This document shows positions 4,449-51,100 of a stretch of 64,000 bases of DNA, one piece after another. The notes under the pieces are model-generated. The model saw nothing but the letters and a program-made list of their open reading frames with translations. It searched no databases and was not told the origin of the DNA. Made by a program: the position numbers and the translations under genes. Position 1 is the stretch's first letter. Each line of letters starts with the position of its first letter. This DNA comes from Piromyces finnis finn (lineage: Eukaryota; Fungi; Neocallimastigomycota), in NCBI GenBank assembly GCA_002104945.1, contig MCFH01000005.1:248001-312000 (forward strand). Direction: 5' to 3'.

Positions 4449-6281
4449 ATGAATGCATTATTATTATTAATAATATGTGTAATAATACTTGGATTAGGCT
4501 ATATCATTTATGGTAAATGGCTTGAAAAAACTTGGGGTGTTAGAGAAGGTGATGATGAAGAAACACCAGCAAATACAATGGAGGATGGTGTTGATTATGT
4601 TCCAGCCAAAGCTCCTGTTTTGATGGGACATCATTTCTCATCTATTGCTGGCGCTGGTCCAATTACTGGTCCAATTGGTGCTGCTATGTTTGGTTGGCTT
4701 CCTGTTACTCTTTGGATTCTTATCGGTGGTATTTTCTTTGGTGGCGTTCATGATTTTGGCGCTTTATATGCATCAATTTGTCATAAAGGTCAATCCATTG
4801 GTGAAATTATTTCTGCTAATATGAGTCGTCGCGCTAAGCGTTTATTTATCATTTTCTCATACTTAACTTTAGTTTTGGTTGTTGCAGCATTTTCTTCTAT
4901 TGTTGCTACTTCTTTTGGTGCAACCAAAATTAATGGGGTTATTGATAAAACTGCAAGTTCTACTAATGCTGCTGTTGCCATGGTTTCCATGCTTTTCATA
5001 TTAATCGCTGTTATTTATGGTTTCATTGTTCATAAGATCAATCCACCAATGATTATTGCTTCTATTTTGGGAGTTTTTGCTATTGTTGCCTGTTTAATTA
5101 TTGGTATGTGTTTCCATCCATTATACTTAACTGCTAATGCTTGGATGATTATTATTGGAATATATATTTTTATCGCTTCTGTTACACCAGTTTGGATTTT
5201 ACTTCAACCTCGTGACTATTTAAGTTCATTCCTTCTTTATTTCATGGTAATTGTTGCATTTATTGGCGTTTTTGGTGCTCATCCAAGTATGGACAAATTC
5301 CCAGCCTTTTCAGGTTTTTCTATTACTAATGACAATGGAACTCAATACATGTTTCCAATCCTTTTCACTACTGTTGCATGTGGTGCTATTTCAGGTTTCC
5401 ACTCTTTAGTTTCTTCTGGTACTACTTCTAAACAATTAAGCAAGAAAAAAGAAGCAAAACCAATTGCATATGGTGGTATGTTATTAGAATGTGTTATTGC
5501 CATTTTAACTCTTTGCGCTATTTCATATGCCTATCGCTGGAATATTGAAAACCCAACTGAGAAACTTACTGGAGCAACTGCTATTTTTGCAGGTGGTATT
5601 TCTAAGATGGTAGCAACTATTCCAGGTTTAAAAAGTTTAGAAAAAAGTTTATATACTTCATTGGTCGTTATTTATTCTGCTTTTTGTTTAACTTCATTAG
5701 ATACTGCTACTCGTTTAGCTAGATTCATGTTCCAAGAATTTTGGTTAGAACCTGGACAAACTACAAAAGATATTAAAGATGGATGGAAGAAGGTTATGGT
5801 AAATCCATACTTTGCTACCATTCTTTCCGTTGTTTTAGGTGTTACACTTGGAATTAATGGTTATGATAAAATTTGGGGTTTATTTGGTGCTGCTAACCAA
5901 TTACTTGCTGGTATTGGTCTTTTAGCTATCACTACCTGGCTTGGTAATGTTGGTAAGAACAATAAAATGTTATACATTCCAATGGCTTTCATGATGGTTG
6001 TTACAATTTGTTCTTTAATTTTAACTGTAAAGAATCAAATTATTATTATTTCTAATGGAAAAGCTGATTGGGGACCATATACTCAAACTATCTTTGGTAT
6101 TCTTTTAATTATACTTTCTCTTGTTCTTTTAATTGAAGGTCTTCAGACCTTATTCGGAAAGGAAAAAAAAGAAAAAATTCAAAAAGAAATAATTACCAAG
6201 GAAAAAATGGAAGAAATGAAAGTTAAAGAAGAAGGTACTGAAGATATTACTGATGTTAAAATTAGTAAAACTGAACCATAA
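4449..6281 (+). CDS. cstA: CstA-family (carbon starvation protein A) peptide/pyruvate transporter; intronless, bacterial type
   Basis: 610-aa multi-pass membrane ORF with CstA motifs DGVDYVP, GHHFSSIAGAGPITGP, GGVHDFGAL, LLQPRDYL, ACGAISGFHSLVSSGTTSKQ, TSLDTATRLARF and FGAANQLLA. Confidence 0.93.
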   Translation: MNALLLLIICVIILGLGYIIYGKWLEKTWGVREGDDEETPANTMEDGVDYVPAKAPVLMGHHFSSIAGAGPITGPIGAAMFGWLPVTLWILIGGIFFGGVHDFGALYASICHKGQSIGEIISANMSRRAKRLFIIFSYLTLVLVVAAFSSIVATSFGATKINGVIDKTASSTNAAVAMVSMLFILIAVIYGFIVHKINPPMIIASILGVFAIVACLIIGMCFHPLYLTANAWMIIIGIYIFIASVTPVWILLQPRDYLSSFLLYFMVIVAFIGVFGAHPSMDKFPAFSGFSITNDNGTQYMFPILFTTVACGAISGFHSLVSSGTTSKQLSKKKEAKPIAYGGMLLECVIAILTLCAISYAYRWNIENPTEKLTGATAIFAGGISKMVATIPGLKSLEKSLYTSLVVIYSAFCLTSLDTATRLARFMFQEFWLEPGQTTKDIKDGWKKVMVNPYFATILSVVLGVTLGINGYDKIWGLFGAANQLLAGIGLLAITTWLGNVGKNNKMLYIPMAFMMVVTICSLILTVKNQIIIISNGKADWGPYTQTIFGILLIILSLVLLIEGLQTLFGKEKKEKIQKEIITKEKMEEMKVKEEGTEDITDVKISKTEP

Positions 6282-6583
6282 GTACATAAAGTAAACTATT
6301 GATTATAGTTACAAGATAATCCAAAAATAAATAGAATTTTTTAATTCAATAATATAATATCCTAATGATGGATATTATATTTGTAAAATAGAAATAATTA
6401 ATAAATGAAATATTTAATTAAATTAATAATTAACCTCTCAAAAAAAAAAAAAAAGAAAGAAAAACAAAATTATTATAAACAATTTCTATTATAATATATT
6501 CATAAACTAATATATTATATATAGTATATAAATAAAAAAAATTAGTCTTAAATTCAAATATAGATAATAAAATTATATATATA

Positions 6584-6776
6584 CAAAATATAAATATATA
6601 GAATTTAAAAAAAAAGTCAAATGTAAAATTAAGTTATATAAAAAATAAAATAATAAATAAAAAAAAAATTATCAAAATATAAATATATAGAATTTAAAAA
6701 AAAAGTCAAATGTAAAATTAAGTTATATAAAAAATAAAATAATAAATAAAAAAAAAATTATCTAAAATATAAATAT
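6584..6776. repeat. 89-bp tandem duplication (about 2.2 copies) just upstream of LINE A
   Basis: The unit starting caaaatataaatatatagaattt begins at 6584 and 6673, with a partial copy at 6762. Confidence 0.85.
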
Positions 6777-6828
6777 TTCATCCATTATTCATTCTGTGTT
6801 AAATGTATAATATGTTAATAAATTAGAG

Positions 6829-6935
<107 letters not shown>

Positions 6936-7055
6936 CCTTGGGAACGCATCATGAAAATATTCCAGATCTACAGCAAACACAATTTCAATCTCTTGATAAC
7001 TATCGAGGTATATCACTTATCAATAATGGTATTAAGTTGATTTCCAAAATTGTCT

Positions 7056-7224
7056 CCCTCTTGGGAACGTGCCTTCATTTATTTAATAAATGTAGTTTCT
7101 CAAGGGGGTCTACTCATGCTCATGGTACTGAGAGAGTAGAAAGAATTAAATCCAAGCATTGCGCAATGGATGCTTGGTTAGTCTTCAAGGGAAAATTATT
7201 AGGACTAAGCTCATGGTACTGAGC
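7056..7224 (+). ncRNA. Structured 5' leader of LINE A (five hairpins); function unknown
   Basis: Stems: CCCTCTTGGGAA/TTTCTCAAGGGGG (7056-7108), TCTACTC/GAGTAGA (7109-7140) enclosing CTCA/TGAG, CCAAGCAT/ATGCTTGG (7152-7177), TTAGTCTT/AGGACTAA (7178-7208) and GCTCA/TGAGC (7209-7224). Near-identical copies occur at 12806 and 12930. Confidence 0.65.
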
Positions 7225-7826
7225 GATTAAAAAACATTTTATTCATCGAATTTAAGTATTTGATGAATAAGTTGAATGTTTGATATTCAGGTAAGTTTGT
7301 ATAGTATTTAATTAGAAGAGTAATACATTTTGTTGCTGTATTTTTTCTTTTATTCATGTATTCTTGTAGTACTACTCTTCTCTTGTAAGAATCCAATGTA
7401 GTCAACTTTAGCATTTGCATTGTACTTTTATATTCATGTAGCTATTGTTGTATTGTTTCTTGTAAGAGACTGATTCACTCTACATCATGTAAAAATACTA
7501 TTCACAAGCTTTCTGGTGTCGACATTCTTGATTCAAATTTTTTACCAATTTAAATATTTAATGAAAAGTAAAGTCAAACAAGTTTAGTGTCAAAAAGCGA
7601 ATCGAATTTACTAACAACAAACCAAAACTAGAATTTTTAAAAAAAGTTAACAACTAGAATTCAAAAAAAGAAACTTTAAACTTTAAACAAAGTATCGTAA
7701 CAATTTTTGTACTATCCAGTACTTTTAAGAAGAGAGAGAGAGACAGATTTTTTCCATATACGTTATATTTATAATTTTTATTAGTATTTATTTTATATTC
7801 AATTTTTTTAATTAGAATTAATTATC

Positions 7827-10800
7827 ATGTCAGTCCTTTATATTAAAGATAAGAATTATATCAGACGTGGTACCCGGTCTTATGGTATCCCCTTAGATGA
7901 TATTCGCTCCTTCTTTATCCGTGGTATTCGATCATGGTCAGTAAATATGCTATGGGAAAAACTCGAGGTTATTCTAGAAGATAAATTTAATTCAGTTATT
8001 AGTGTTAAATATTTTCAGACTTTCAATGATCACTTTTTCTTAGTCAAGGTTCATGGTTCATCGAAAGATTGTATTAAAATCTTACACATGTTAAAGAAGA
8101 AACTTTCAGTTACCTCAATTTCCTTTTCAGCTCGTAGTAGAAGGAATCACAAATACACTTTTTCCACTCTCAAACGTAAAATTTTAGTTTCTAATAAACA
8201 TCAACATTCTATTCAACAATCATTTCAACAATCAGTTCAACAATCTCATCAACAATCCGATCTTCAACTAGATCTTCAACAAGATCTTCAACAAGTTTCC
8301 AATCATGAAAATATTCCAGATCTACAGCAAACACAATTTCATTCTCAACATTCAACAATTAATTCTAATAGCTCTATCAACTCTGATAACAGTTCAATAG
8401 TTGATAGTTCTTCAGTTTCACAGCCATCTAGTAATAGTTCTACTTATTCCTCTGATGCATCATCCATTAATAACGATGACTTTAATAATAATAATAATAG
8501 CAACGATTCTTCCTCATCCAACAAGCCTGATAACTTTTCTTTTTGTCTTAGTTGGAACACCAATGGGTGGAATCACGAAAAGAGAGATAGTATTAGCTAT
8601 TTCACAGCTATTTTCAAACCATTATTTTTATGTTTCCAAGAAACTGGTAATGGTTCTGGATCGAATACAGATTATCCTTGTCGTGTTACTTTGCGAAACT
8701 ATAGACACTTTTTCAAGAAAGCTGACGAATCAGTTCCGGGAATGAGAGGTTTATATTTAGGTTTTCACAATTCATGTCAAGCCTCACTTGAAAACTTCTC
8801 TGGAAAGTATATTATTTCTATTTATACTTTTAGTCTCTGGAATAGATTCAAATGCTCGATTGGTAATGTTTATATGCCTCATAGTCATCACAACATCTAT
8901 GTTGATCATGCAAAGTTAGAAGTTCGCTTGTGGTTACAAACTCATTCATCCCATCCATCGATTCTTGTTGGTGATTTTAATATGTCTAAAGTAAAATTAT
9001 CCAACTGGTTATCAACTAATGGATTAGGAGATTGGGAAATTCTTCCGCTTAGAGGGTCTACTATCTCTTGGACTCGAGGTGATCAATCTTCCGACATTGA
9101 CCATGCTCTTATCAATTCGAAGATGAAAGATCTTATTCACTCAGGATCATTTATAAATAATTTTTATCCTGTATCAGACCATAAGCCACTTCTTATTAAT
9201 GGTAAAATTATTCCTATGGAAGATTTTTCTAATGACTTTAATGTTCCTAAGAAAATTCTGAAATGGAATAGATTAAAATGTATTGAGGAAAAGGAATCTA
9301 TTCTCAGTCATAATAAATTCCAAATACTTTCAGCAAAATCCAACGATCCTAATGTTTCTACAGATGAACTTTCCAAAGAGTTTACTTCAACTGCTTTCTC
9401 AATTGCAGACGAGCTCAGTATTACTTCAGCAAATAATGTTATAAAGTCTTCATTTCATATTTCACAACAAATTTTTAATCTCCAAAAAATCAAAATGAAG
9501 TTGTATAAGAGATTTAAAAAAGAAAGAATTTATGATATAGATGAATTTATTAAAAGAATTAAAATCTACCGTAAGCTCATTGATTACATCCACAAAAGAT
9601 GTAATGAATTTAGGAAGCAAGAATATCTTCATTGGATTAAAACAGGATGTGAGTATATGAAGAGTCATAATCCTAAGAAGGCCTGGAAATGGATCAAGAA
9701 AACTGCAAAAATTGGAAAAGATTCTTTCTTTATTGCTCAACCAATTAAAAATAAAAATGGAGAATTAGTTGTTGCTACGGAAGAACAACTAGAAGTGTGG
9801 CATGATCATTTCGAAAAGCTTGCATCAGACCCAAGTGGTGTAAGTCTTGATTTGGAGCATTGGTATGAAGAACCAATGAATAAACGTTTTTCACTTCCTA
9901 TGCTTGATGAGTGGGATATCAACCAAGATATTAGTATTGATGAAGTCAAGTCAGCTATCCTCACTACTCCAAATTATAAAGCATCAGGTCCGGATGGTAT
10001 TCCAATTGAATTTTACAAAGCATTAATTCCATCAAGTAATGATTCTAATAATGCTACAGATAATAATTCTTCTGGTAATACTACTTCAGATAATGATGCT
10101 CATGGTTTAAATTTTATTCTTAAATTATTCAACCGTATTTGGGATGGAGATTTCCCCAACTCATGGAATGAATCCAGTATTGTTTCTATTCCTAAGAAGG
10201 GAGATTTGACAGATTGTGATAACTATCGAGGTATATCACTTATCAATAATGGTATTAAGTTGATTTCCAAAATTGTCACCACTAGAATCTCAGAATATGG
10301 TCTAAAGAATAATTTCATTAGACCTGAACAATTTGGTTTTCGAAAAAAGGAAGAAAGTATTAGTCTTTTCATTTCAATCCAAGAAATATGCCGTAGACGT
10401 CAATTAGATAATAAAGAGACATATTTGGCCTTTTTAGATCTCAGGAAAGCATACGATTCAGTCCCAATCGGTAATATTCTCCATAAATTAGATTGTTTAG
10501 GAATCCGAGGTAAGAGTCTACAATTTATCAAAAATTTATATTTAACATCTAAGGCTAATGTCAAATTAGATGGACAATTCTCGAAATCTTTTGATGTGAA
10601 GAAAGGAGTCCGTCAAGGATGCCCTCTTTCTCCTATTCTCTTTAATCTCTTTATTAATGATATATTTAGAGAGTGCGAAGATCTCGGAGTCAGTTTAGGT
10701 GACACTCGATGCTGTGGTGGACTTTTTGCAGATGATATAGTTATTTGTGCTCCAACAAGAGGATGCTTAAAAAAGATGCTTAGAAGAGTTAATGAATGGG

Positions 10801-12350
10801 CACTGTATAATGAAATGGAATTTGGTATCCAGAAATGTTCAACGATGGTGATTCGTCCTGAATCAATAGAAAATCAGAACAAGAGAGATCCAACATTTTA
10901 CTTAGCAGGACAACCCATTCCAACTACTGATTGCTATACTTATCTTGGTGTTCCATTTGATAAGAATCTGTCCCTTAAACCAGTAATTAAAGCTCTTAAT
11001 AACAAGGTTTTGAAAGGACTTTTCTCAGTCAGTAAATTCTTAAGAAATCCTAATATTCCTATTCCTTTCAAAAAACTAGTACTTAACTCACAAGTAATCA
11101 GCAGAGTTTCATACTTTGCACCATTACTTGGATCCAACAAAGCTAGGTCTAGAATTGCTCAGAAGCATGTTAACAAAGGAATACGATGGGTTGCCGGAGT
11201 TCATAAAGCTGTATCGTTTATATCTTTATACTCTATCTCAAAAGATTTGAATATTCCTCCATTGTCAGCCAAATGTGCGTTAGCTCAGGTTAGATGTTTT
11301 AACAAATGGAAAAACTCAAATTGTATTATCTCACACCTTGTCAATTACATTCCTAAATTTAGAAAATACACGTGGTGCAAATCAAGTAGGACACTTGATA
11401 AAAAACTAAAGAAACATGGAGATGTTAAAGCAGTTAAAAACTTTTATTGGAAAGATCTCAAAGGGAATTCAATCAAAGCGCAATATTATGATGATAATAA
11501 ATTTATTGAAACTAAAGATTTTATTAAATTATGTTATGAGTACCCAGAGTTTGCCTATGGCTTCTACTGGCTATTGAAAGCAAGAAGCGGATACAAGTTG
11601 GATGCTAGAGTTGCCAAAGCTGCCAAATTTGTTGATCCAGTTTGTCCTAACTACTGTCCATGTTGCAAGTGTGGTGTTCAAAGTATTAAACATTGGTTAT
11701 TAGATTGTCCAACATTTAGAGATATCCGTATTAAACATTATGATTCCATAGTTCAGCTATTAAATTTTTTCAGTCAACGTAATTCCAATAGTCCTATCAA
11801 TAATAATGAAATTGATAATATCAGTAGAGATAGTAATAACATTAATAGTAATAGTAACAATAGTAGTAATAACAATAGTAATAGTAACAATAGTAATAGT
11901 AACAATAGTAATAATAACAATTATAGAAATAATAATATTAGTAATGATAGCAATAGTGAAGATAATAATTCTAATTTAGATAGTAATTTAGTTAATGTTA
12001 GTAATAGTTCTAATAATCCGGTGAATATTAATGTGTATGATTATTCTAGTGTGTACAGTAAAATATTTAAATTCCTTCTTGGGGGAAGAAGTTTTAACAA
12101 TATTAATTACAATTCAAGGGAATGGAAAGAACTTTGTAAGCGTCAGATTCAATCTGATACTAACGAAGGAACACCATTCTTGACGGTAACCGCGGAACTT
12201 CTAACCAAAATCATGCCTTTTGCTATTGGCCAGCAATGGTCAATGTTCAAAAGGTTTGAAGCAACATCCAAGAGCGTCAATGCTGAAGAAACAGTAAGAC
12301 AGGCCAGGAGGGCCAGCGCAACCAATGGAGATCATAATTTTGTTCCATGA
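7827..12350 (+). CDS. LINE A polyprotein: N-terminal RRM-like domain, Q/S/N linker, APE endonuclease, reverse transcriptase, CCHC zinc knuckle
   Basis: APE motifs SWNTNG, CFQET, LVGDFN, IDHAL, SDHKP; RT motifs GPDGIP, NYRGISL, QFGFR, FLDLRKAYDSV, GVRQGCPLSP, LFADD, YTYLG; C-terminal CPCCKC...HWLLDC. Uninterrupted 1507-aa ORF. Confidence 0.95.
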   Translation: MSVLYIKDKNYIRRGTRSYGIPLDDIRSFFIRGIRSWSVNMLWEKLEVILEDKFNSVISVKYFQTFNDHFFLVKVHGSSKDCIKILHMLKKKLSVTSISFSARSRRNHKYTFSTLKRKILVSNKHQHSIQQSFQQSVQQSHQQSDLQLDLQQDLQQVSNHENIPDLQQTQFHSQHSTINSNSSINSDNSSIVDSSSVSQPSSNSSTYSSDASSINNDDFNNNNNSNDSSSSNKPDNFSFCLSWNTNGWNHEKRDSISYFTAIFKPLFLCFQETGNGSGSNTDYPCRVTLRNYRHFFKKADESVPGMRGLYLGFHNSCQASLENFSGKYIISIYTFSLWNRFKCSIGNVYMPHSHHNIYVDHAKLEVRLWLQTHSSHPSILVGDFNMSKVKLSNWLSTNGLGDWEILPLRGSTISWTRGDQSSDIDHALINSKMKDLIHSGSFINNFYPVSDHKPLLINGKIIPMEDFSNDFNVPKKILKWNRLKCIEEKESILSHNKFQILSAKSNDPNVSTDELSKEFTSTAFSIADELSITSANNVIKSSFHISQQIFNLQKIKMKLYKRFKKERIYDIDEFIKRIKIYRKLIDYIHKRCNEFRKQEYLHWIKTGCEYMKSHNPKKAWKWIKKTAKIGKDSFFIAQPIKNKNGELVVATEEQLEVWHDHFEKLASDPSGVSLDLEHWYEEPMNKRFSLPMLDEWDINQDISIDEVKSAILTTPNYKASGPDGIPIEFYKALIPSSNDSNNATDNNSSGNTTSDNDAHGLNFILKLFNRIWDGDFPNSWNESSIVSIPKKGDLTDCDNYRGISLINNGIKLISKIVTTRISEYGLKNNFIRPEQFGFRKKEESISLFISIQEICRRRQLDNKETYLAFLDLRKAYDSVPIGNILHKLDCLGIRGKSLQFIKNLYLTSKANVKLDGQFSKSFDVKKGVRQGCPLSPILFNLFINDIFRECEDLGVSLGDTRCCGGLFADDIVICAPTRGCLKKMLRRVNEWALYNEMEFGIQKCSTMVIRPESIENQNKRDPTFYLAGQPIPTTDCYTYLGVPFDKNLSLKPVIKALNNKVLKGLFSVSKFLRNPNIPIPFKKLVLNSQVISRVSYFAPLLGSNKARSRIAQKHVNKGIRWVAGVHKAVSFISLYSISKDLNIPPLSAKCALAQVRCFNKWKNSNCIISHLVNYIPKFRKYTWCKSSRTLDKKLKKHGDVKAVKNFYWKDLKGNSIKAQYYDDNKFIETKDFIKLCYEYPEFAYGFYWLLKARSGYKLDARVAKAAKFVDPVCPNYCPCCKCGVQSIKHWLLDCPTFRDIRIKHYDSIVQLLNFFSQRNSNSPINNNEIDNISRDSNNINSNSNNSSNNNSNSNNSNSNNSNNNNYRNNNISNDSNSEDNNSNLDSNLVNVSNSSNNPVNINVYDYSSVYSKIFKFLLGGRSFNNINYNSREWKELCKRQIQSDTNEGTPFLTVTAELLTKIMPFAIGQQWSMFKRFEATSKSVNAEETVRQARRASATNGDHNFVP

Positions 12351-12585
12351 TAAAATTTTGATCTTTGGCTCGGTGTCCCATTGGAAGTCAAATACAATTA
12401 TTATACTTTAGTATGATAGTGGCTTTCTTACTTTAATTAAAATTACTAGAATACATTATACCCAATTTTTATTCATTTGTGTTTATTTAAACATATTTTT
12501 TTTATTTTTATTTATTTTTAATTTTTTATTACATGTATTATAATTTTAATTAAATTAATAATAAAGTGTAAAAATATTTGATGCC

Positions 12586-12647
<62 letters not shown>

Positions 12648-12682
12648 TAGAAATTAAAAATTACTTGTTGTAGTTAAAAAAA

Positions 12683-12745
<63 letters not shown>

Positions 12746-12799
12746 GTTTATTATTATTATTATTATTATGTTTATTATTATGTTTATTATTATTATTAT
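12683..12799. repeat. (TTA)n microsatellite between LINE A and LINE B
   Basis: Interrupted tta run directly visible; its end overlaps the upstream TSD of LINE B. Confidence 0.95.
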
Positions 12800-12805
12800 G
12801 AATAT

Positions 12806-12928
12806 CCCTCTTGGGAACGTGCCTTCATTTATTTAATAAATGTAGTTTCTCAAGGGGGTCTACTCATGCTCATGGTACTGAGAGAGTAGAAAGAATTAAA
12901 TCCAAGTATTGCGCAATGGATGCTTGGT
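12806..12928 (+). ncRNA. Extra truncated copy (123 nt) of the structured LINE leader, placed in front of LINE B
   Basis: Differs from 7056-7178 at one position (ccaagTatt) and ends just after hairpin 3. Confidence 0.7.
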
Positions 12929-12929
12929 G

Positions 12930-13100
12930 CCCTCTTGGGTACGTGCCTTCATTTATTTAATAAATGTAGTTTCTCAAGGGGGTCTACTCATGCTCATGGT
13001 ACTGAGAGAGTAGGAAGAATTAAATCCAAGTATTGCGCAATGGATACTTGGTTAGTCTTTATTTGGAAATATTATTAGGACTAAGCTCATGGTACTGAGC
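12930..13100 (+). ncRNA. Structured 5' leader of LINE B (complete five-hairpin module)
   Basis: Same stems as 7056-7224. Stem 3 reads CCAAGTAT/ATACTTGG (compensatory change), stem 2 ends GAGTAGG (wobble), and the loop of stem 4 differs while its stem is kept. Confidence 0.65.
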
Positions 13101-14333
13101 GAACAGAGTTGATAATTTGAGTGTTAGTTGTTATATCATATATCCCTTACACCTTCAACTTATTTTCTAGATAGTAGTTGCTTTAACAACTTTTATAACA
13201 TATTATTTTAAACTTAAAATTGTTTGATTCGGTAGTATTAAATACTGATTTTGAATATTTCTTGATTTCATTTTTATTTTAGCTTTCATCGATAATTTGT
13301 TATCCCAGTTTACTACTTATTCTCTTTGTTCTTTTATTCCTTTTTTATTCTTTATATGTTGATTAGTCAGATAGTTTTGTTTTTTCAGTTAGTTGGTTAT
13401 TCCTTTCATTTATTCTTGAGTTTCGTGTGGGGTGCAGCTTTCATTACTATAATCATATTTAATCTTTTATTTTTTCTATTTTTATTATTTTCGAGGGGCG
13501 CGGCTTTTTTATTTTTCCTTTATGATTTTATATGATTCTAGTAATATCTTTTTTTATTTCTTTTTTTTTTGTAACTCTAGATTTTCCAAGGAATCTCTTT
13601 TCTACTAACATTCTTTTGTATACTTTTTCTATCTCTTTTCTATATATATATATTTCTTATACTTTATATTATATGTATATTTATATATCTGTATAACTTA
13701 AGTAGGTTTATTATGGACTATTATGGTAAGTATTAACACCTTTTTTTCTTTAACATTTCTATTATCAAAGCTTCTATCCTGGAAAATCGAGTATTCTATT
13801 TTTATATTGTAAATACTACTCTTGTTTCAATTTTATCTTTAAATAAAAAAAAAAAAATTTTATTATGTTTACCCAAAATTCTTCAACTTATTTCCATTAT
13901 TTTTGATATAACAACTTTTCACTCTTATTATCTCTCTACCTTACAACATAAACAACCTATATGAATGTTCAATTTCAACAATCAGAATCAACACAATACA
14001 ATTATCATCCAATAAATTATACAATTCTTATTAATATAAAGAGCTTTCAAAATACAGTTATAATACAGAAATCCAAAGTGATAGATATTCAAAATTTATC
14101 TTTCCGTTTAAAGTCTTCAGTAGAGTTAGAACTAAGTTTGTCAACAACTTAGCCACTTTTCCAGTTATAAATTTAAAATATTGTTTGACAAATAATCCAC
14201 TTGCTATATATTATATCCGTCTTTACTATTATTATTTTTATTTTACTATATATTTTATTTCATTATCTTATTTATATCATTATATCAATACTTCAAACTA
14301 TTAATATCTATTGTCATAATAAGTTCTTTCAAA

Positions 14334-17300
14334 ATGAACAATACCAATTGTACTGTACCTACCTTACGACGTGGTCTTCGTTTCTTCGGATCTAACTCCA
14401 ATAAATCATATCTAATTTTTATCCATGATCTTAGTTCATGGTCAAAACAACGACTAATGGAATTTCTTTTAAAGGACATTCAACCTTTCAATGATATTCT
14501 TCAATCCCTCACCAAAAAATATTCACAATCACTCGGTATCTATTTCATTCTTAAAGTCAATGGAAAATGTCCGCTTAAAGCCATGTTACTTATACACTCA
14601 CTTTCTGAAAAACTCCCAATCTCTAGTAAAATATCTTGGAAATTCATTGATAAGCTCAAAAACAATAGATCATACAAAAACAAACGATCTATCAAATCTA
14701 CTACTGGTCCACTCTCTGACGATTTCTATTTTAGTCATCTAAGCTCTAATGCTTCCTTTTTCAACTTATGTACTTGTTGGAACATCAATGGTTGGAACCC
14801 GGAGAAAAAGGACGGTGTTTTATACTTCATCTCTGTTTTCAAACCTGTATGTGTCTGTCTTCAAGAAGTAGGTAACAGCCAATTCCTCTGTGGTAATGCA
14901 ATTTCCTCCCCATGCCTACCGAACTATAAACCAGTACACAGACGTGCTAATCCTAAAGTTCCAGGTATGAGAGGACTTTACATTGGTGTTCATAATTCTT
15001 GTTCCTTTACTCCTGAACCTCTTCTATATAAGTACATCATTTCAGTTACAATATTGTCATTTTGGAACCAGAGATGTACCATTGGTAATATTTACTTCCC
15101 GCAAACTAGATGGCCGGATGCTAGATTAATTGCCTTTGATGAACTTGATAAGTGGTTAACAACGCATAACAAATTCAACCACCCAGCTATCCTTGTAGGA
15201 GACTTTAATATGTCAGCTATTAAAATCAAATCTTATATATCACAACACTTCCCGGATTGGACTATGGCTGAGTTAACTGGTAATAATTTTACCTGGGAAA
15301 AAGGATCTAAATCTTCATGCATTGATCATATTATATACAACAAAGCTATGACAGAACACATAAACAAATCTTCAGTTTGTGAAGTTTTCCACGATGTTTC
15401 TGATCACAAACCGATCCTTGTGTCTTGTAAAAAAGACTCTTCGGATGGTTTCAAAAAGCCTAAGAAGACCTTTAAGTGGTCAAGTCATATCTGTAACACA
15501 AAGTGTTCTGACATTCTTACTAGTAATCGCTTTGCTGTTCTAGCTTCCGAGCTTGAAGCTAATTGTGATAGCCTTTCGGCTGACGATATGGTTTCAAGAT
15601 TTTTAGATACTTCCAAAACTATAGGTAAAGAAATAAAAGCCATTGTGCCCGCAGATTTAAAAGGTCCAGCATTCCATTGCCCTCAATACATCAAAAACTT
15701 ATCACATGAAAAACACCTGGCTTACAAAAATATTAAGCCCCTTTCAGATTGCGCTGACATGGAAAATTATCTTAACCAGTTCTCCATATACCAAAATCTA
15801 TGTAATACCATCAAAAAGGTTAAGAGCAAATTCAGATCCAATCTCTATAAAGCTAATATTGTTTCTATCGGTAAACATTTTATTGATAAAAGCTTTAGAC
15901 AAGGTTGGAAAGGCCTTAAAAAACTTGCCAAACCAAGTTATTCGTCCTCCCATGTTTCAACTATTAAGGACAAGAATGGCAAGGATTTATTTACTCCTCA
16001 AGAACAATTAAAACGTTGGGCTGAACATTATGAAAATCTTGCATCTGATGTTACAAATCACAGCTTAAATCGTGGTTACTGGGAAAGAGCCTTCCAATTC
16101 AACCATATCAACCAAATAGCATGAGATATAAATGGTCCCATTTCTATTGAGGAAATTAGAAATGTTGTTCTGTCAATGAAGAATAACAAGGCTCCAGGTC
16201 CCGATGGTATCCCAATTGAATTTTTCAAAGCTTTCTTTTGTAACGAAGAACTGGAGAAAGAACATAAGTCTGCTGGAAATTGTCTTAAATTAATTTTTAA
16301 TAAAATCTGGAATGGTTCCTTTCCTTTGAAATGGAACTCTGCTTCCATTGTTTCTATTCCAAAGAAAGGCGATCTCTCAGACTGTAATAATTATCGTGGT
16401 ATTTCTCTCATCAATGTAGGTCTTAAAATTATTTCAAAAATTGTAACTAATAGAATTTCAAAGTATGCTCTTTCTCATAATTTTATAGGACCTGAGCAAT
16501 TTGGTTTTTGCAATAAAGAAGAATGCATTATCTTATTTATTTCCATTAGAGAAATCTGTCAAAGAAGAAAATTTAAAGGAAAAGCCACTTATGTTGCCTT
16601 TCTAGACCTTAAAAAAGCATACGACTCAGTTCCTATTTTTAATATCCTTACAAAGTTATATAAATTAGGTATACGTGGTAAATGTTTTGATTTTCTCAAT
16701 AATCTCTACTCTACCTCTAAAGCTCGTGCACGTTTCTTGGATATGCTTTCCAATGGATTCCCTATAAACCGTGGTGTAAGACAAGGATGTCCTCTTTCTC
16801 CTATACTGTTTAACCTCTTTATCAATGATATTTTAAATAAATGTGAAAGGCTTGGAGTTAGCTTAGGTAATAAACGTTGTTGTGGTGGCCTTTTCGCTGA
16901 TGACATTGTTTTGATTGCTCCTAGTAAGAAGAACCTTCAAAAGATGCTCAATCTAGTCCTTGATTGGGCTAATTTAAATGAAATGTCTTTTGGAATAAAT
17001 AAATGTGCAACTATTGTTGTTAAACCTATCAACTTTAATAGATCCCCTAGTTATGTCGACCCAACATTTTACATCGGTATGTACTCGATTCCAAAGGTTT
17101 CTTGCTATACTTATCTTGGAATCCCATTCGACGAAGATCTTTCTTTGACTCCTATTCTGTCTAATATGTACAAAAAAGTTCAGAATTCTTTATTCTCTTT
17201 TAAGAACTTCCTCACCAACAATTGTGTTCCTATTGGCTTAAAAAACATAGTAATTCATTCTTATATTTTAAGCAAAGTATCTTATTATGCTCCTTTGCTT

Positions 17301-18631
17301 GGTTCCAACAAAAATAGAACTAGAAGAGTCCAATCTCTTATCAATACTGCTGTTTTATGGAGTGTCAATAGCTTTCACAATAAAAGTTTTAATAACAAAG
17401 ATTTTGTTTTTGAACGAAATTCATTTATTAGTCTGTATGCTCTTACAAGAGATATGAAGATTCCTACCCTTTCAGGTATTTGTGCTGCGCAACAAGTGAA
17501 ATGCTTTGTTAAATGGAGAAAATCAAATTGTATAATTAAAGATCTCGTCCGATCTATTCCTCCCATGTCTCATTACTCTTGGGCCAAAGAATCTTGTTCA
17601 CTACATAAGAAGCTTATGAAAATAAATATTAAAAGTACTAAAGATATTAGAGAATATTATTGGAATAATAGTAGCCTAAATAATGGAAGTAAAGCCCTCA
17701 GATATACTAACAACAAATTCCTTAATTCAAATCGCCTAATGCATATCGGTCTCAACAAACCTCACTTAAATTTAGGAATTACCTGGATTATTCGTATTCG
17801 ATGCGGTTATGAAAATACTACCCGAATTGCTATTGCCAGTAATAGAGTTACTCCTGACTGCCCTCGTGTCTGTCCATGTTGCGGATATGACGAACAATCT
17901 TTTTACCATTGGATATTAGAATGTTCTGCATTCTCTGAATACAGAGCTTCTTCACTTAGCTTTCTTGACGATCTTTTTACCCTTTTTTACAATAAATATA
18001 AGAACCAATTCATCACATACTTACTCCCCGAAACGGAAGTAAGAAAAATAATTTATAACTATTTTTTACGTTCCTTCTTGGTGGAACTTTAGCTTATGAT
18101 GAGCTACATATCGATAAGGCGGAACAAAGACATTTGAATGAACAGCTTTACAGTTCATCGGGGTCTCATGTTCCATATGTAGAGGGTCTCGCGGCTTTTC
18201 TTACTAAAACAATCCCTATCATTAGTAGCTCTATGAAGCTACTTTTTGATAGGTTTAGTAAGACACCTAACGTAATCAAGAGCGCCGACGTCGTACCGAT
18301 ATGGCAAAGGAACATTTCCAATGTTCCGTACACAGGGTTCAATGTTAGTATTTCCTCAAATTCGAATGAAAACATTATGAACTCATGGGAGAGTTTAGTG
18401 GACACCACACTATCATACCTGATGTTACTTCTTTTTTTTATTTCATTTAATTTATTAGGTAGGGACCAATCCCACACAGTACAAATTGCAGAGTTCATTG
18501 AACTTTTATGCAACTTAAATAATTATTTTATATTTTTTTATTTTTATATTTTTATTTATATATATTTTTTTATTTTTATTTATTATTTATTATATCATTA
18601 TCAATATGTATTATCACCTAATATTATGTAA
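14334..18631 (+). pseudogene. LINE B polyprotein (RRM-like, APE, RT, CCHC) broken by one nonsense codon and one frameshift
   Basis: ORFs 14334-16124 and 16176-18092 share a frame and are separated by TGA at 16122-16124, where LINE A has Trp (EWDIN). A 1-nt loss near 18070 shifts ...FLLGG into the frame of ORF 18134-18631, whose start aligns with the C-terminus of LINE A. Motifs include CWNING, CLQEV, VGDFN, SDHKP, GVRQGCPLSP, LFADD and CPCC...HWILEC. Confidence 0.88.
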
Positions 18632-18682
18632 TATCACTAATTAAGTAAGTAAATAAATAAAAGATGTGTATTCTCTTCCTAG

Positions 18683-18721
<39 letters not shown>

Positions 18722-19634
18722 ATTATGAATATTTTTATATACTAATTAATAAATTTTTTGATGATTTAATTAATTAAAAAAGGTATAACAAAAAATAAGC
18801 TTCAAAGAACAAATTATTGATTGTTATATTGTGGTTTATTTACAGTTATCTTCCATTAAAAAATTAAAAGAAAAATACAATAAAAAAATATTAATCTTTA
18901 ATATATAAATACTATTTAAATAAGAATATTTTTGAAGAGGTCTTTATTATAATAGTTATATATAATATCACTATTTATTTTCTTATTAATTCATATTTAA
19001 TTATAATAATTATAAAATATTAGAGTAAATAAAGTGTAAATAAAACAAAAAAATCAATTTAAATCGTTTTTTTTTTTTTTTTTTTTTTTTTTATTTATTA
19101 AATTTATAATATATGAAGTTTATTAATAACTTTTCACAATCATAATTATTTTTTTCCTTAAAATAAATATTAAATAATATAGCAATATTCATAATATTTC
19201 TTTTAGATATTATTAAACAAAATTTTTGTAATAATAGTAAGATACAATGTTTAAAAAATAAACTATTTATAAATTGGACTTAGTATTACAAAATGGAAAA
19301 ATGAAAAATATAATAATTTGAGTATAAATACTTAGAGTTAAAACCCTCAAATATATTAATTTAAAGAAAAGATATTTAGTATAATATAAGATAAGTAACA
19401 AATCAAAATTATTAATCAAACCTAATTCTCCTACAACTAATTAATCAGATATAACAGGAATTTTAATTTTACTATTACAAAACATCACTTACTAATAATT
19501 ATTATTATTTTAAAATTGCATTAAAATGATTTTATATACTATCCTTTATAAATTTATATGGCTATTAAAACACTTCTCTTATTTTATTGTATTTGAATAA
19601 ATAATAATTGAAATTAAGTGTATTAATTTTACTT

Positions 19635-45119: not shown

Positions 45120-48100
45120 ATGGAAAATAATTATGATAAGTTAGAGAAAATATCTGCAGCGTCAGATACCTCAACAGTTTTATTAGATATTTCTAAATTA
45201 GAATTTAATTTGAAGAAACTTGAGGCCTTAGCAAATACTCCAGCATCTGATGATGAGAGTGATGTCGATTTTGAAATCAGTGATATTTCAGATGATGAAA
45301 ATATAGATCTTTTAAAAGACAATATTGTACCAAAAAGACCTGCAAAAAATTATCAAAATGATGAATATAAAACTAGAAGGTATTCTAGATTATTAGGGTA
45401 TGTAACCCCTTCTCCAGAACAAAATGAGGTCTTAGTTCAATCAAAAAGTATTTCAAGAGGTAAATTTATATACTCTTTATAATTATTATTATTGAAATTT
45501 GATATCATTTTATAAAAAATTTTGTAAAGTTATTACTTTTTTTTTTTTTTAAATAATATATATTATAAAGTTATAATTAAAAAAAAAGTATTTTAATTTT
45601 TAAATAAATATTGAAAATTGATTTTAATTTATTAATTAAAATATTCTTAGGAAATGAAAATAAGGCTCGTGGGGTCCATTTCGGTAATAATGAAAATGCA
45701 TTTAGTGAAATTTCAGCAAATCCAAGGGATATTAATGGAAATATTAATTCTAATTCAAAATCAAATCAACTTTTTAATAAGGAGAAATCATCTAATGAAG
45801 ATGTAAAACAGGAATTAGAAATTATGAAGCAAGAATGCATTAATAGGGAAAATGATCTTCAAAGATTAAAAGAAGAACTCGATACTCTAAAAAAAGATTA
45901 TATAATTAAAGATAATAAATTGAAAAAATTGGAAGTTGAAAAATCAAATTTACAATCAGATCTTGTTTTATATAAGGAAAAATCAAATACATTAGAAAGA
46001 AAATATAGTCATATATCTGATACAAGTTCTTTAAATGATGGTTCAAAAGGTGAGGTACTCACCATAAGAGATGAATTAAGAAATTTAGATAGCAAACTTA
46101 CTAAAGATATTCAACGTGCTCGTTATTTGGAAAGAGCTCGTGATCCAAATGCAAAAATATTTGCTGATCAACTTGAAAAATATCAAGCCAAATTTAGGGA
46201 ATTAAAGAAGGTAAATGATGAAGAAAAAAATAAATCAAGAGAATATAAAACAAGGTTTATTGAAATTAAGAAGCTAATTAATCAATTAGAAGAAAAACAA
46301 AAAAATGATAAAAAAGCTTATAAACTTTTAAAACAATCAAGCGAAGAAGAAATTACTAACTATAAAACACTACTTCAAACCGAACAAGAAAGATCAAAAG
46401 AATTAGAAGCTAAATTAAAAGAATTAAAGAATACTCAGACTATCTATGAAATTGAAAAGATCAAAGAAATTGAAAGATTAACAGTTCAAATAAAGCAAAT
46501 TGAAATCAAATCAAAAGAATATATTTCTTTAATTCAGAACGAAAAAGAAAAGGTCAATAAGTTAGAAGAACAATTGAAAAAGAAGGAAGAAAAATCAAGA
46601 AATAATGATAATGAGGAAATTGAAAAATTGAGAATAGAAATTAAGGAAACAAAATTAAAGGTAGTTGAATATGAAAAATTAATTTTGATTGAACGTGCTA
46701 AATCGAAACAGTTACTTATTCAGTTAAATGAACAAGAAGAACAAACAAAAATTTATAAAATAACAAAACAAACAGAAATTAAAAAGTTAATAACTCAAAT
46801 CAATACTATTACTGTAATATCAAAACAGTATGAAGAGAAAATAAAACATGAACAAAACAAAACAGAGGAACTTGAAAAACAAGTGAAACAATATGAAGAA
46901 AAGTCTAGAGATGTTGAAGTTGTAAAGAACAATGAAATTGAAGATTTAAAGAAGCAAATATCAATAATTCAATCCAAAATATTGGAGTATGAAATTATAA
47001 TTGAGAATGAAAAATTAAGATATAATGATTTAGAAGAAAGATCAAAAGGAATAGAATTAAGAAAGGATAAGGAAATTGAGAAACTTACTAAAGAAACTGG
47101 CTCATTAAAAATTCAATTAAATTCTAAAGAAATGAAATCTAAAGAAATTGAAAATAAGAAACAAAGTGAAATTGAAAACTTATTAGTACGCATTAACAGT
47201 ATTGAAAAAATGGCACAAGAAGAAAAGGAAAAAGCAAAAGCTTTTGAAAAGCAATTAAATGAAACAGAAATTAGATCTAAAAATATTGAAAAAGAAAAAG
47301 AAGAAGTAATAAAAGAATTAAATGGTCAAATTACGGAATCGAAGATAAAAATTGAAGAATATATTATTTTAATTGAAAATGAAAAGGAAAATGTAAAAAA
47401 TATAGAAGAAAAGCTTAATCAAAGAGATGAACATGCAAGAAATTTGGAAACTGAAAAGCAACATGAGATTCAAAAATTAAATGATCAAATTATCGAAGCT
47501 AGAATTAAAACTAATGAGTATCAAAACATAATAGATCAAGAAAGAAAGAAATATAATGATTTAGTTCAAATATTAAATGAAAAGGAAGTTAATAATAAGA
47601 ACAATGAAGTTTTGAAACAAAATGAAATTGAAAAATTGCTAATTCAAATTAGTGAAATTGAACGCATTAATCAACAAGAAAAGAAAAGAGCTACCCTTTT
47701 GCAAAATCAATTAATAGAACGAGAAGAACAATTAAAAGCAAAGGAAGAACAAACTAAGGTTTTTGAAAAAGAAAAGGAAATTGAAATTGAAAAATTGGTT
47801 GAAAAAATAACAATAATTGAAGAAATGATGAGGGCTGAAAAAGAAAAAGCAATTGAATTAGAGAAACTACTAGCTGAGAATGAAGAAAAAACTAGAAATC
47901 TTGAAGTTGAAAAGCAAAATAATATTAAGTCTTTACTTCCAGTAATTGTTCAAAGAATTGTTCAAAACGAAAAAGAAAAGAAAGATTTTATTGATAGTCA
48001 AATGAATGAAAGAGAGAGAATAAGAAAGGTGGAATCAGAAAGGCAACATGAAATTGAAAATTTGAAACTTCAGATTGAACAGGCAAATGCTAAAGCTAAA

Positions 48101-51100
48101 GATTCCAAAAAATTAATTAATGAAAAGAAGGAGAAAATTGAATTTTTGGAAAAGAGATTAATTGAGAATGAAGCTAGGACAAGAGAAGTTGATAATGAGA
48201 AGCAAAAGAAGCTTGATGAGTTAATTTTACAAATCACTGAAATTGAAGAGATAATTGAATTTGAAAGAGAAAAATCTAATGATTTAGAAGTGGCTGTTAA
48301 GGAAGAAAAGGAAAAGGCTGAAAAATTAGAGAAACAACTTGCCAATTATGAAATTAAGTCAAAAGATGATTCTACTAGAAAACAAGTTGAAATTGATGAT
48401 TTAAAGCAACAAATTTCAGAAGCAAAGATTAAGGCCAAGAACTATGAAAATACAATTCTTGATAAGAAAGAAAAGATTGAAAAGTTAGAAAAGAGATTAG
48501 TAGAAAACGAAGCTAAATCAAAAGAACTTGAACTTTCAAAAAAGGTAGAAATTGAACGTTTAAATGAAAAAATTACTATAATTGAAAAGGCTATTGAAGT
48601 TGAAAAAGTAAAATCTAGTGATTTAGAAAAAATTGTTAAAGAAGAAAAGGAAAAGGCACAATTATTAGAACAAAAACTTAGTGATAGTGAAGTTAAAATA
48701 AAGGATGCTACTAATGAAAAACAAGAAAAAATTGAAAACTTACTTTTAAAGCTTACAGAAATTCAAAATAATGTTGAACAAGAGAAAGAAAGAGCAAATG
48801 GTTTAGAAAAACTATTAATTGAAAATGAAGAAAGGACAAGAAAGCTTGAAGATGAAAAGAATAATCAATTAAGAGCTCTATTCCCAATTGTTATTGAAAA
48901 AATTGTAAAAAATGAAAAGCAAAGAAATGAGAATTTACAACTTCAAGTTATTGAAAAAGTAAAATTTTCAGAAAAGCAAAAAGAAATTGATGAATTAAAT
49001 CGTCAAATTGATGATGCTAAGACAAAAGCACAAAATTATGAAAAAGAAGTTAATGAAAATAAGAATAAAATCAGTATTTTGGAAAAACAACTTACTGATA
49101 ACGAAGTTAAATTAAGAGAAATTGAGGATACTAAACAAGGTGAAATTAATACCCTTCTTCAAAAAATTATTGTCATTGAAAAAATTATTGAACATGAAAA
49201 AAGTAAAGCAGATGAATTAGAAGAGCAATTAAATGATAATTTAGAAAAATCTAAAGTTATTGAAATTGATAAGCAAAATATTATTGAAGATCTAACTCAA
49301 GAAATTTCTAAAAATAAGATAAAATTACAAGAATATAAAAATATCATTAAAAAGAAGAAGGAGAAAATTTCTGGATTAGAAAAACAATTGGAAGATTCTG
49401 AATTTCAATCCAAGGAATTATATGATTCAAAACAAAAAGAAATTAATAATTTGAACATTAAACTTGCTGAAATTAAAGAGATTTATGAAATTGAAAAAGA
49501 TAAGGTAGGTGAGCTAGAACAAAAGTTAAATGTCCATGAAATTCAATCTAGGAAAATAACTTTTGCGAAGGATGATGAGATTGAAGGATTAAAGAATCAA
49601 ATCGGAGAAGCAAATCGTAAAACAGAAGATTATGAGATTATAATTAAGGAACATAAATGTATGATAAATGATTTACAAAATCAACTAAATGAAAATATAA
49701 TTAAGTATAAAGAAATTGGAATAAAAAAGCAAAATGAAATTGAAAAATTAATTGAAAAGATTATTATTATTGAACGTAATGTAGAAGAAGAAAAAGCAAA
49801 AGCAAATAATTTGAAAAAAGTTGTTGAAGAAGAAAAAGCTAAAGCAAGTGATTTAAAAGAACAATTAAAGAATAATAAAGAGAAGTTTGAAGAAGTTGAA
49901 AATGCCAAGCAAGGTGAAATAGAGGATTTAGTAAGTAAAGTTACTGAGATTCAAAAGGTTGTTGAAAAAGAAAAGGAGAAAGCTAATAAATTAGAAAAAC
50001 AACTAGCTGAAAATGAAGAAAAGACCAAACAGCTTGAAGATGATAAGAAAAAGCAATTGAAAACTTTAATTCCAATTATTATTAGTAAAATTGTTCAAAA
50101 TGAAAAAGACAAGAATGATTTTGTTAATCTTCAAAATCTTGAAATAGCTAAACAAAAGGAAAACGAAGGATTAACTAAGGATATAAACAAGGCTAAGGAA
50201 AAAATGCAAAATTATGAAAGAATGATTAAGGAATATAAGGGTGAAATTTCTAATTTGAAACAACAATTAGAAGATAATGAACAAATAGCTAAAAAAATGA
50301 ATGATTCAAAGCAAAATGAGATTCAACAATTAATTGAAAAAATTGCAATTGTTGAAAAAATCGTTGAGAATGAAAGAACAAAAACTAATGATTTAGAAGA
50401 AAGGTTAGTTGAAAATGCAGAAAAATTTAGAGTCATAGAAAATAACAAGCAGGATGAAGTTGAAAAACTAAATAAAGATATTAATAATGCAAATGATAAA
50501 GTCCAAAGTTATGAAAAAATGATTGAAGAAAATAAAAAAAGAATTGCTATATTGGAAAAGCAACTTGCTGACAGTGAAACAATTAATAAAAAGATTAGTA
50601 GTGATAAACAAAGAGAAATTAATAATTTAAATTCTAAACTCCTTGAGGTTGAGAGAATATTTGAAATGGAGAAGGAAAGAGCTAATAATTTAGAACAAGA
50701 ATTAATTAATTATGAAATTGAATCCAGGGAGGCTGTAAACGAAAAAGATAATAAAATTAACAAATTAATTCTTAAGATATCTGAAATTGAAAAAGTTGTT
50801 GAAAAAGAAAAAGAAAAATCAAATGATTTAGAGGTTCAATTAGCAGTCAATGAACAGAGAACAAGGGAGCTTGAAGTTGAAAAGAAGAATCAATTACAAT
50901 CATTAATTCCATTTATTATTCAAAAAATCGTTGCAAATGAAAAAAATAAAAATAATATAATAGAATATCAATGTAGTGAAAATAAGAGAATTAAAACTTT
51001 CCAATTAGAAAAACAAAATGAAATTAATAATTTAAATCTTCAGATAGAAAACTATGAAAAAATAATTGATAATCATAAGAATGAAATTTCTAATCTGAAG

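Follow-up and report, generated by a model that had tools for sequence, protein, structure and literature searches.

Why do two LINE families whose proteins have clearly diverged begin with nearly the same RNA? The question is raised by a window of 64,000 nucleotides from the anaerobic gut fungus Piromyces finnis (contig MCFH01000005.1, positions 248,001 to 312,000), in which two LINE insertions, LINE A and LINE B, both on the plus strand, carry almost identical leaders. The leader of LINE A (7056-7224) and that of LINE B (12930-13100) align base for base from CCCTCTTGGG to ...GGTACTGAGC with 94.2% BLAST identity. Similarity ends two bases (GA) after the fifth hairpin, and the rest of the two 5′ UTRs does not align. 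In contrast, the proteins are 50% identical over the RT region and only 37% over the endonuclease region, so that LINE A and LINE B are two diverged families of one LINE clade. A third, partial copy at 12806-12928 equals leader bases 1–123 and is followed by one G, and the 14-mer CTCATGGTACTGAG occurs five times in the window against 0 expected.

Both leaders lie in insertions with recognizable ends. LINE A (6828-12638) consists of a 5′ chain of captured pieces, the leader, the 5′ UTR, an ORF with an RT domain (7827-12350), and a poly(A) (12589-12638), and is flanked by a 13-bp target-site duplication (TSD), TTAATAAATTAGA, at 6815-6827 and 12639-12651. Its 5′ junction chain (6828-7055) reads g, A103, ttt, a 12-mer resembling a leader start, a 108-nt LINE A RT-coding fragment, and then t. 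This chain lies inside the TSD and was thus made during insertion, consistent with serial template jumps. LINE B (12806-18719) has an ORF in two pieces, an endonuclease part (14334-16124) and an RT part (16176-18092), with Pfam Exo_endo_phos and RVT_1 domains, and a poly(A) at 18686-18719. It is flanked by the 13-bp TSD TTATTATGAATAT at 12793-12805 and 18720-18732, which directly abuts leader base 1. LINE B's own leader comprises a core (12930-13052) and a tail (13053-13100), and carries A11T, A85G, C102T, G117A, and a variant hairpin-4 loop. In front of it, but still inside the LINE B TSD, is the extra outer unit with its junction G (12806-12929); this unit is A-type with C102T and is 99.2% identical to the A leader, whereas the adjacent B leader is 94.2% identical.

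Is the leader a structured RNA? The fold is far better than chance (−55.5 kcal/mol, z −4.85, 0 of 200 shuffles). The sequence-only reading, which described a five-hairpin leader of about 170 nt with covariation, was correct about the individual pair changes: pair 102/117 is C-G in A, U.G in the extra unit, and U-A in B; pair 54/85 is U-A in A and U.G in B; and the loop of hairpin 4 varies while its stem does not. However, the three window copies by themselves carry too few changes to prove covariation, and the boundaries of the module require correction. The conserved unit is bases 1–123 (7056-7178 in LINE A; fold z −5.76), with hairpin H1 (bases 1–53, with an inner hairpin), H2 (54–85, loop UGGUAC), and H3 (97–122, loop GCGCAAUG). 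The tail containing hairpins 4 and 5 (7179-7224) is a decayed partial repeat of unit bases about 38–99 that runs about 20 nt into the A UTR. The local alignment score of this repeat is 47 against 20.3 +/- 3.7 for shuffles, with 0 of 2000 reaching it, and a covariance model of the leader, R1, also hits this stretch weakly.

The proof of covariation comes from diverged homologs. BLAST and nhmmer searches with the P. finnis leader against 80 metagenome LINE loci found only one locus, L107, but R1 found leaders at the LINE 5′ UTRs of L107 (59 bits) and of four further metagenome loci, L116, L100, L111, and L094. All helices are 100% canonical in four lineages with different letters, and stems of 7–14 bp change sequence completely between lineages yet stay fully paired, while the loops are conserved. 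MAFFT misaligned the diverged leaders, and no single clean joint alignment of the P. finnis, L116, and L100 types could be built; covariation was counted on one alignment (A10) and on hand-listed pairs checked by script. On A10, 91.7% of cells pair and 16 pairs changed on both sides, a result matched by 0 of 500 shuffles, and slid controls give 0–5. The sense strand is 4–11 kcal/mol more stable than the antisense strand in five lineages. A loop–loop contact between bases 14–18 and the H2 loop is present in four lineages, with one double change and a register shift, but it is not significant by shuffling (P 0.09–0.6 per lineage) and is only suggestive. Several LINE relatives with long upstream sequence (L091, L097, L117, and L122) gave no leader match. 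Rfam has no match either at E<=10 on window positions 6500-13600 or at E<=5 on the five metagenome loci.

Where does the unit occur? The genome holds at least 350 leader copies. In 98 sampled arrays, the leader is followed by the A UTR in 87 and by the B UTR in 10; the one remaining hit (L052) is a truncated fragment, bases 3–56, joined to another leader start, and none stands alone. The outermost unit starts at base 1 in 65 arrays and at base 2–3 in 11, with unrelated upstream flanks. Of 553 H3 3′ halves genome-wide, 310 run into the tail and 235 into G plus the next unit. A genome-wide scan with the covariance model scored only the best 150 candidates, all of them young copies, and so says nothing about diverged leader types in P. 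finnis. Arrays contain 1 to 8 units; all 45 outer units have G8-C46 and G10-C44 intact, whereas 49 of 56 internal modules carry G8A or G10A. The arrays whose internal module is intact through hairpin 1 (bases 1–53; arrays L007, L009, L026, and L028) are all singletons.

Leader type follows the host rather than the LINE family. Besides LINE A and LINE B, L094 (A family) and L100 (B family) share another leader type at 93.8% identity, while the rest is at most 68% identical. The broad inference of the sequence-only reading, that this is an undescribed functional RNA module both conserved and swapped between LINE families, is therefore supported, although nothing here shows self-cleavage or decides among the functions it listed, namely ribozyme, promoter, and RNP signal.

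The explanation that we favor, with moderate confidence, is that the first 123 nt are a conserved, structured, family-independent 5′-terminal leader RNA of a clade of endonuclease-type LINEs in anaerobic gut fungi, and that an intact unit defines where the retrotransposition template begins, the first base of the element being in the first base pair of hairpin 1. Most likely it works as a Pr77-like 5′ hallmark: its DNA would be, or overlap, the internal promoter that fixes initiation at base 1, and its RNA fold, with the loops UGGUAC and GCGCAAUG, would then shield and mark the 5′ end and dock a protein. Promoter activity is purely inferred here, without transcription-start or RNA-end data, and protein docking is likewise inferred. 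Base 1 is a C and is base-paired, which is unusual for a capped, scanned mRNA and fits a processed end at least as well. The N-terminal domain of the ORF has no Pfam hit, and although its predicted structure (pLDDT 82.6) has a ferredoxin/RRM-like topology, Foldseek gives only generic ferredoxin-like hits, so this is not evidence for leader binding. The near-identity between the A and B leaders is, in this view, not vertical conservation but the result of exchange, in which the reverse transcriptase, on reaching the 5′ end of one LINE RNA, would switch to the leader of another LINE RNA and add a fresh unit. That unit would become the working 5′ end, and the older internal unit would decay into UTR. 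The template-switch mechanism is an inference, but the A-type outer unit inside the LINE B TSD agrees with it, and junctions carry extra untemplated bases and pieces of other LINE RNA, as known for template-jumping non-LTR reverse transcriptases (PMC2104539; PMC8857657). However, all 100 listed 123-junctions carry the same G, so most arrays are inherited rather than made anew, and the rate of template switching is uncertain.

Among the alternatives, the most serious, although it remains tentative, is that the unit is a new class of self-cleaving ribozyme that cuts immediately 5′ of base 1 and, like the HDV-like ribozymes of R2, RTE, and L1Tc, would release the LINE RNA from read-through or tandem co-transcripts; the promoter could then lie anywhere upstream or overlap the unit. 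Ribozymes at LINE 5′ ends are well documented (PMC3185411; PMC4035085), and one function would explain together the nucleotide-exact 5′ end at the foot of a conserved compact fold, the invariant unpaired nucleotides (GGGA, UGGUAC, and GCGCAAUG), the base-paired, cap-unfriendly 5′ end, the fact that only arrays with a hairpin-1-mutated internal module are multi-copy, and the frequent head-to-tail LINE tandems that would be co-transcribed. Such a unit, possibly a new class of 5′-end-forming RNA unrelated in fold to HDV-like ribozymes, would behave as a selfish “cap” module, spreading between LINE families by template switching and replacing worn-out leaders. However, neither HDV-like nor hammerhead, twister, twister-sister, pistol, hatchet, or hairpin ribozymes were listed in the Rfam scans described above, and the topology is not HDV-like, because the inner hairpin of H1, the only P3 candidate, is absent in L100, L094, and L111, and its loop in P. 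finnis is 3 nt with no partner for P1.1. In addition, about 120 nt is large for a small ribozyme, and the sieve against intact internal modules is also expected for an internal promoter. It is much less likely that the fold stalls a 5′–3′ exonuclease in the manner of an xrRNA, by which heterogeneous upstream-initiated transcripts would be trimmed back to base 1. The exact 5′ end does lie at the first base pair of a stable, possibly pseudoknotted structure, but Rfam shows no similarity to known xrRNA folds, the pseudoknot is unproven, and no ring-like topology is evident.

The remaining readings also seem improbable. Tandem 5′ arrays with variable unit number recall the purely DNA-level promoter monomers of mouse L1Md (PMC6454616; PMC9022269), the antisense strand also folds better than shuffles, and ATTGCGCAAT is a perfect bZIP-type palindrome in P. 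finnis, so that the hairpins might be by-products of palindromic factor sites. Double-stranded factor sites, however, do not require that stems stay fully paired while their sequence changes completely, G.U pairs favor the sense strand, the palindrome is not kept elsewhere (UAUGCGCAAUG in L100, L116, and L111), and internal units are not kept intact. Although this reverse transcriptase clearly makes 5′ chimeras, capture of a host small RNA, as in U6-L1 chimeras or MINE in Magnaporthe (PMC2104539), is the least likely origin of the leader: no free-standing copy was found among the 98 arrays, 545 of 553 units are followed by the tail or by another unit, the junction to the LINE body is constant within each family (87 A and 10 B arrays), related LINEs in other organisms also have the leader at their 5′ ends, and Rfam has no match. 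Nested insertion of new copies into the leaders of older ones is also doubtful as the main source of tandem units. LINEs here often insert into one another and into poly(A) tails, but the extra unit in the window lies inside the TSD of LINE B, the common extra G is not predicted by nested insertion, the same array types recur at many loci with different flanks, and the two TSDs seen are AT-rich, unlike bases 111–123.

Among the closest known systems is the Pr77 hallmark/L1TcRz of trypanosomatid L1Tc/ingi-clade retroposons (PMC3383444; PMC4035085; PMC4748587), in which a short sequence at the exact 5′ end is likewise shared by different retroposon families of one host group, and there defines the RNA 5′ end and acts as both DNA (internal promoter) and RNA. 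Pr77, however, is 77 nt and folds as an HDV-like ribozyme, whereas the present unit is about 90–160 nt, has three hairpins, gives no HDV-like match, lacks a conserved P3/L3, and forms tandem arrays. Mouse L1Md also has head-to-tail repeats at the 5′ end that vary in number between copies, are exchanged between subfamilies, and are linked to the ORF by a non-repeated tail, but its monomers are about 200 bp, act as DNA promoters, and stay similar within an array, while the units here show RNA-level covariation and hairpin-1 mutations in most internal modules. R2 elements probably also carry structured RNA at the 5′ end of the transcript, HDV-like ribozymes and a protein-binding pseudoknot, that sets the 5′ end and/or is bound by the element's protein during integration (RNA binding by R2 protein, PMC4117753), but R2 appears to be site-specific and co-transcribed with rRNA, these LINEs are dispersed, and Rfam shows no sequence or fold match. 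As in template-switch chimeric retrocopies (PMC2104539; PMC8857657; PMC8594491), 5′ junctions are built from several RNA pieces joined with zero to a few extra bases; here, however, the acceptor is mostly the leader of another LINE RNA, so that the product is a leader array that can take over as the working 5′ end, not a dead chimera.

LINE 5′ ends are the least understood part of these elements. The leader offers a compact RNA domain, conserved through covariation, that sits exactly at the first base, has no Rfam family, appeared in no paper found in the literature searched, and occurs in a poorly studied fungal phylum. The genome preserves hundreds of young copies that act as a natural mutagenesis screen, with intact outer units against hairpin-1-mutated internal units, and also the intermediates of leader exchange between families. 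Together these make directly testable how a dispersed LINE fixes its 5′ end and how 5′ UTRs are replaced between lineages, and if the unit self-cleaves, it would be a new ribozyme class.

The window is very AT-rich and lies in a genome of 56.46 Mb in 232 contigs, which is probably that of Piromyces finnis. LINE A is a complete insertion at 6828-12638, flanked by the 13-bp target-site duplication (TSD) TTAATAAATTAGA at 6815 and 12639, and has one ORF at 7827-12350 and a poly(A) tail. LINE B is a complete insertion at 12806-18719, flanked by TTATTATGAATAT at 12793 and 18720, but its ORF is split into two pieces (14334-16124 and 16176-18092 on the forward strand), so this copy is not intact. The two proteins are 50% identical over the RT part and 37% over the endonuclease part. 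Both TSDs seen in the window are AT-rich 13-mers, and a (TTA)n microsatellite with interspersed ATG lies at 12680-12805, between the 3′-flank of LINE A and the insertion site of LINE B. The ORF at 4449-6281 (forward strand, 610 aa) is not a LINE but matches the bacterial-type carbon starvation protein CstA (Pfam PF02554, E 6e-143), and it may be a horizontally acquired gene in this fungal genome. A long stretch at 46000-64000 shows strong strand asymmetry (GC skew +0.26 to +0.41, AT skew +0.28 to +0.38), unlike the rest of the window.

The observation of the sequence-only reading, that the two LINEs share a near-identical leader of several hairpins whose differences preserve pairing, is confirmed. 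The segments 7056-7224 and 12930-13100 align from the same first base to the same last hairpin at about 94% identity, and 12806-12928 is a third copy of bases 1-123 followed by a G, whereas the rest of the two 5′-UTRs is unrelated. The pair changes named in that reading are there, and the sense RNA folds into five hairpins at -55.5 kcal/mol (z -4.85).

The 3′-end of the leader occurs 352 times in the genome with up to 2 mismatches, and 98 arrays were found in 90 loci collected from it. Of these, 87 arrays are followed by the same LINE A UTR and 10 by the LINE B UTR, and none stands alone; the remaining hit (locus L052) is a truncated fragment, bases 3-56, joined to another leader start. The outermost unit begins at base 1 in 65 arrays and at base 2-3 in 11, and the rest are 5′-truncated, often directly after the poly(A) of an upstream LINE A, while the upstream flanks are unrelated. 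Genome-wide, 553 copies of the 3′-half of hairpin 3 split into 310 that continue into the tail, 235 that are followed by G plus the start of another unit, and 8 others. Therefore, among the copies examined, the unit is never a free repeat or a host gene, but is the true 5′-end of the two LINE families. Head-to-tail tandems of LINE A about 5.5 kb apart, with the next element starting in the poly(A) of the previous one, are found at 1521770-1544300 of contig C1 and at many loci with tttgatgccgtt(a)n directly upstream of a leader; either the poly(A) is a preferred target or the RT jumps onto poly(A) tails.

Many elements carry 1-7 extra partial units upstream of the full leader. Most extra units are bases 1-123 plus G, and others end at 65-68, 80, 83, 89, 120 or 121. 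Independent unit-to-unit junctions in P. finnis (loci L007, L026, L028, L033, L035, L054, L070, L071, L076, L079 and L090) cluster at leader bases 65-68 (the 5′-edge of the UGGUAC loop), 89 and 123 (just 3′ of hairpin 3), with a, t, c, g or no extra base. At 866069-866604 of contig C156, four leader units lie at a 137-nt period, unlike the usual 124-nt period. All 45 outer units keep the pairs G8-C46 and G10-C44, whereas 49 of 56 internal full modules carry G8A or G10A, often with C13T, G40A, or A33del/T38G/C44A. These mutated arrays form multi-copy subfamilies with different flanks, while arrays whose internal module is intact through hairpin 1 (bases 1-53; L007, L009, L026 and L028) are all singletons. 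Thus, an intact hairpin 1 marks every working 5′-end, and an RNA that keeps an upstream unit has an inactivated internal one.

In the window, the extra unit on LINE B lies inside the TSD of the element, and it was therefore inserted with the element and is not an older leader that was hit by a new copy. This unit is of the A type, being 99.2% identical to A against 94.2% for B's own leader. Although the variable repeat number could be attributed mostly to new copies landing inside older leaders, the TSD around LINE B, the uniform junction G in all 100 listed junctions and the multi-locus array subfamilies argue against this as the main cause.

Bases 124-169, with about 20 nt of the A UTR, align to unit bases about 38-99 with a score of 47, against 20.3 +/- 3.7 for shuffles, and 0 of 2000 shuffles reached this score. 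The covariance model described below also hits this stretch weakly. Hairpins 4-5 are thus a decayed partial unit. The metagenome locus L111, and weakly L094, also carry a relic of hairpin 3 just downstream, which fits a picture in which units are added at the 5′-end and older ones decay into UTR.

A protein search found relatives at 40-74% identity in metagenome and NCBI contigs, and 80 related loci were collected. A covariance model built only from P. finnis bases 1-125 found leaders in five of them, namely L107 at 49-167 (59 bits, E 3e-14), L116 at 2819-2981 and, with filters off, L100 at 153-244, L111 at 171-264 and L094 at 360-453. All lie on the sense strand upstream of the LINE ORF, and in L116 the leader heads an A-type UTR that is homologous to the P. 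finnis one. Four other LINE relatives from metagenomes (L091, L097, L117 and L122) have 800-1800 nt upstream of the ORF start but gave no leader match even with filters off; either they have another leader type or the contigs lack the 5′-end. Homology stops at about base 123, and the upstream flanks diverge at the run of C that starts hairpin 1.

Every lineage folds into the same order of hairpins 1, 2 and 3 (H1-H2-H3), and all listed pairs, checked by script, are canonical in P. finnis A, L107, L116 and L100, although the stems differ in sequence. For example, the 5′-arm of hairpin 3 is CCAAGCAUU in P. finnis A, CCAAACAUU in L107 and AACAUUAU in L100, whereas the loops GCGCAAUG and (U/C)(G/A)GUAC and the 5′-motif CCCUC...GGGA are kept. 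In an alignment made with the covariance model (L107, L100, L111 and L094), 91.7% of cells pair and 16 pairs changed on both sides; no shuffle out of 500 reaches these values, and slid controls give 0-5 such pairs. Because that alignment is fitted to the model and holds few lineages, this is strong support rather than a formal R-scape test. The sense strand is 4-11 kcal/mol more stable than the antisense in five lineages because of G.U pairs, which points to an RNA-level, sense-strand structure. In addition, bases 14-18 can pair with the H2 loop in four lineages (GUGCC:GGUAC, GUAUC:GGUAC, GUACU:AGUAC and CCGUA:UACGG), but 5-bp matches are common in shuffles (P 0.09-0.6 per lineage), and this tertiary contact is only suggestive.

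While the conserved sense-strand fold at the exact 5′-end, the need for an intact hairpin 1 at working ends and the absence of free copies among those examined are established, the function of the leader can only be inferred. About as likely as not, it is a Pr77-like hallmark, in which an internal promoter fixes initiation at base 1 and the RNA fold shields or marks the end and docks a protein. A new self-cleaving ribozyme is less likely but possible. The ribozyme reading is the most economical, since one function would explain the exact end, the invariant loops, the paired first base and the sieve on internal modules, but it has no positive evidence; no Rfam ribozyme matches, and the topology is not HDV-like. 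Exonuclease stalling and DNA-only promoter monomers both seem very unlikely. As for a protein partner, the N-terminal ~110 aa of the LINE ORF (7827-8156 on the forward strand in the window) are conserved among homologues (RRGxRCYG...SW...) and predicted as a beta-alpha-beta-beta-alpha-beta domain (pLDDT 82.6). However, Foldseek gives only generic ferredoxin-like matches, with no specific PDB match, and Pfam gives nothing, so that such a partner is plausible but unsupported.

The closest known system in role is the Pr77 hallmark/L1TcRz of trypanosomatid retroposons (PMC3383444, PMC4035085, PMC4748587), and the closest in architecture are the monomeric 5′-UTRs of mouse L1 (PMC6454616, PMC9022269). 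The present leader differs from both in fold, in RNA-level covariation and in the decay of internal units. Nothing on this element was found in the literature searched for non-LTR retrotransposons of Neocallimastigomycota.

The type of leader follows the host and not the LINE family. L094 is an A-family element (60% aa identity to A) and L100 is a B-family element (70% and 60% to the two B pieces), and their DNA is at most 68% alike except for the leader, which is 93.8% identical over 112 nt. This is a second, independent case of an A-family and a B-family LINE sharing one leader type, and that type differs greatly from the P. finnis one. Exchange between families is thus evident, and 5′-junctions made of several RNA pieces with extra bases are also observed. 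At 6828-7055 in the window, inside the TSD of LINE A, the junction is a chain of g, 103 A, ttt, a 12-nt leader-start-like piece, a 108-nt LINE A RT-coding fragment (NYRGISLINNGIKLISKIV) and t, which looks like serial template jumps, and the loci L019, L004, L011 and L012 also have LINE coding fragments directly upstream of base 1. It is inferred that the reverse transcriptase switches template at the RNA 5′-end onto the leader of another LINE RNA, as non-LTR reverse transcriptases are known to do (PMC2104539, PMC8857657), and that this switch adds a fresh unit that takes over as the 5′-end. Older B copies in P. finnis (L171, L172 and L082) have leaders about 90% identical to the A type, and therefore LINE B has carried this leader for some time and keeps being refreshed.
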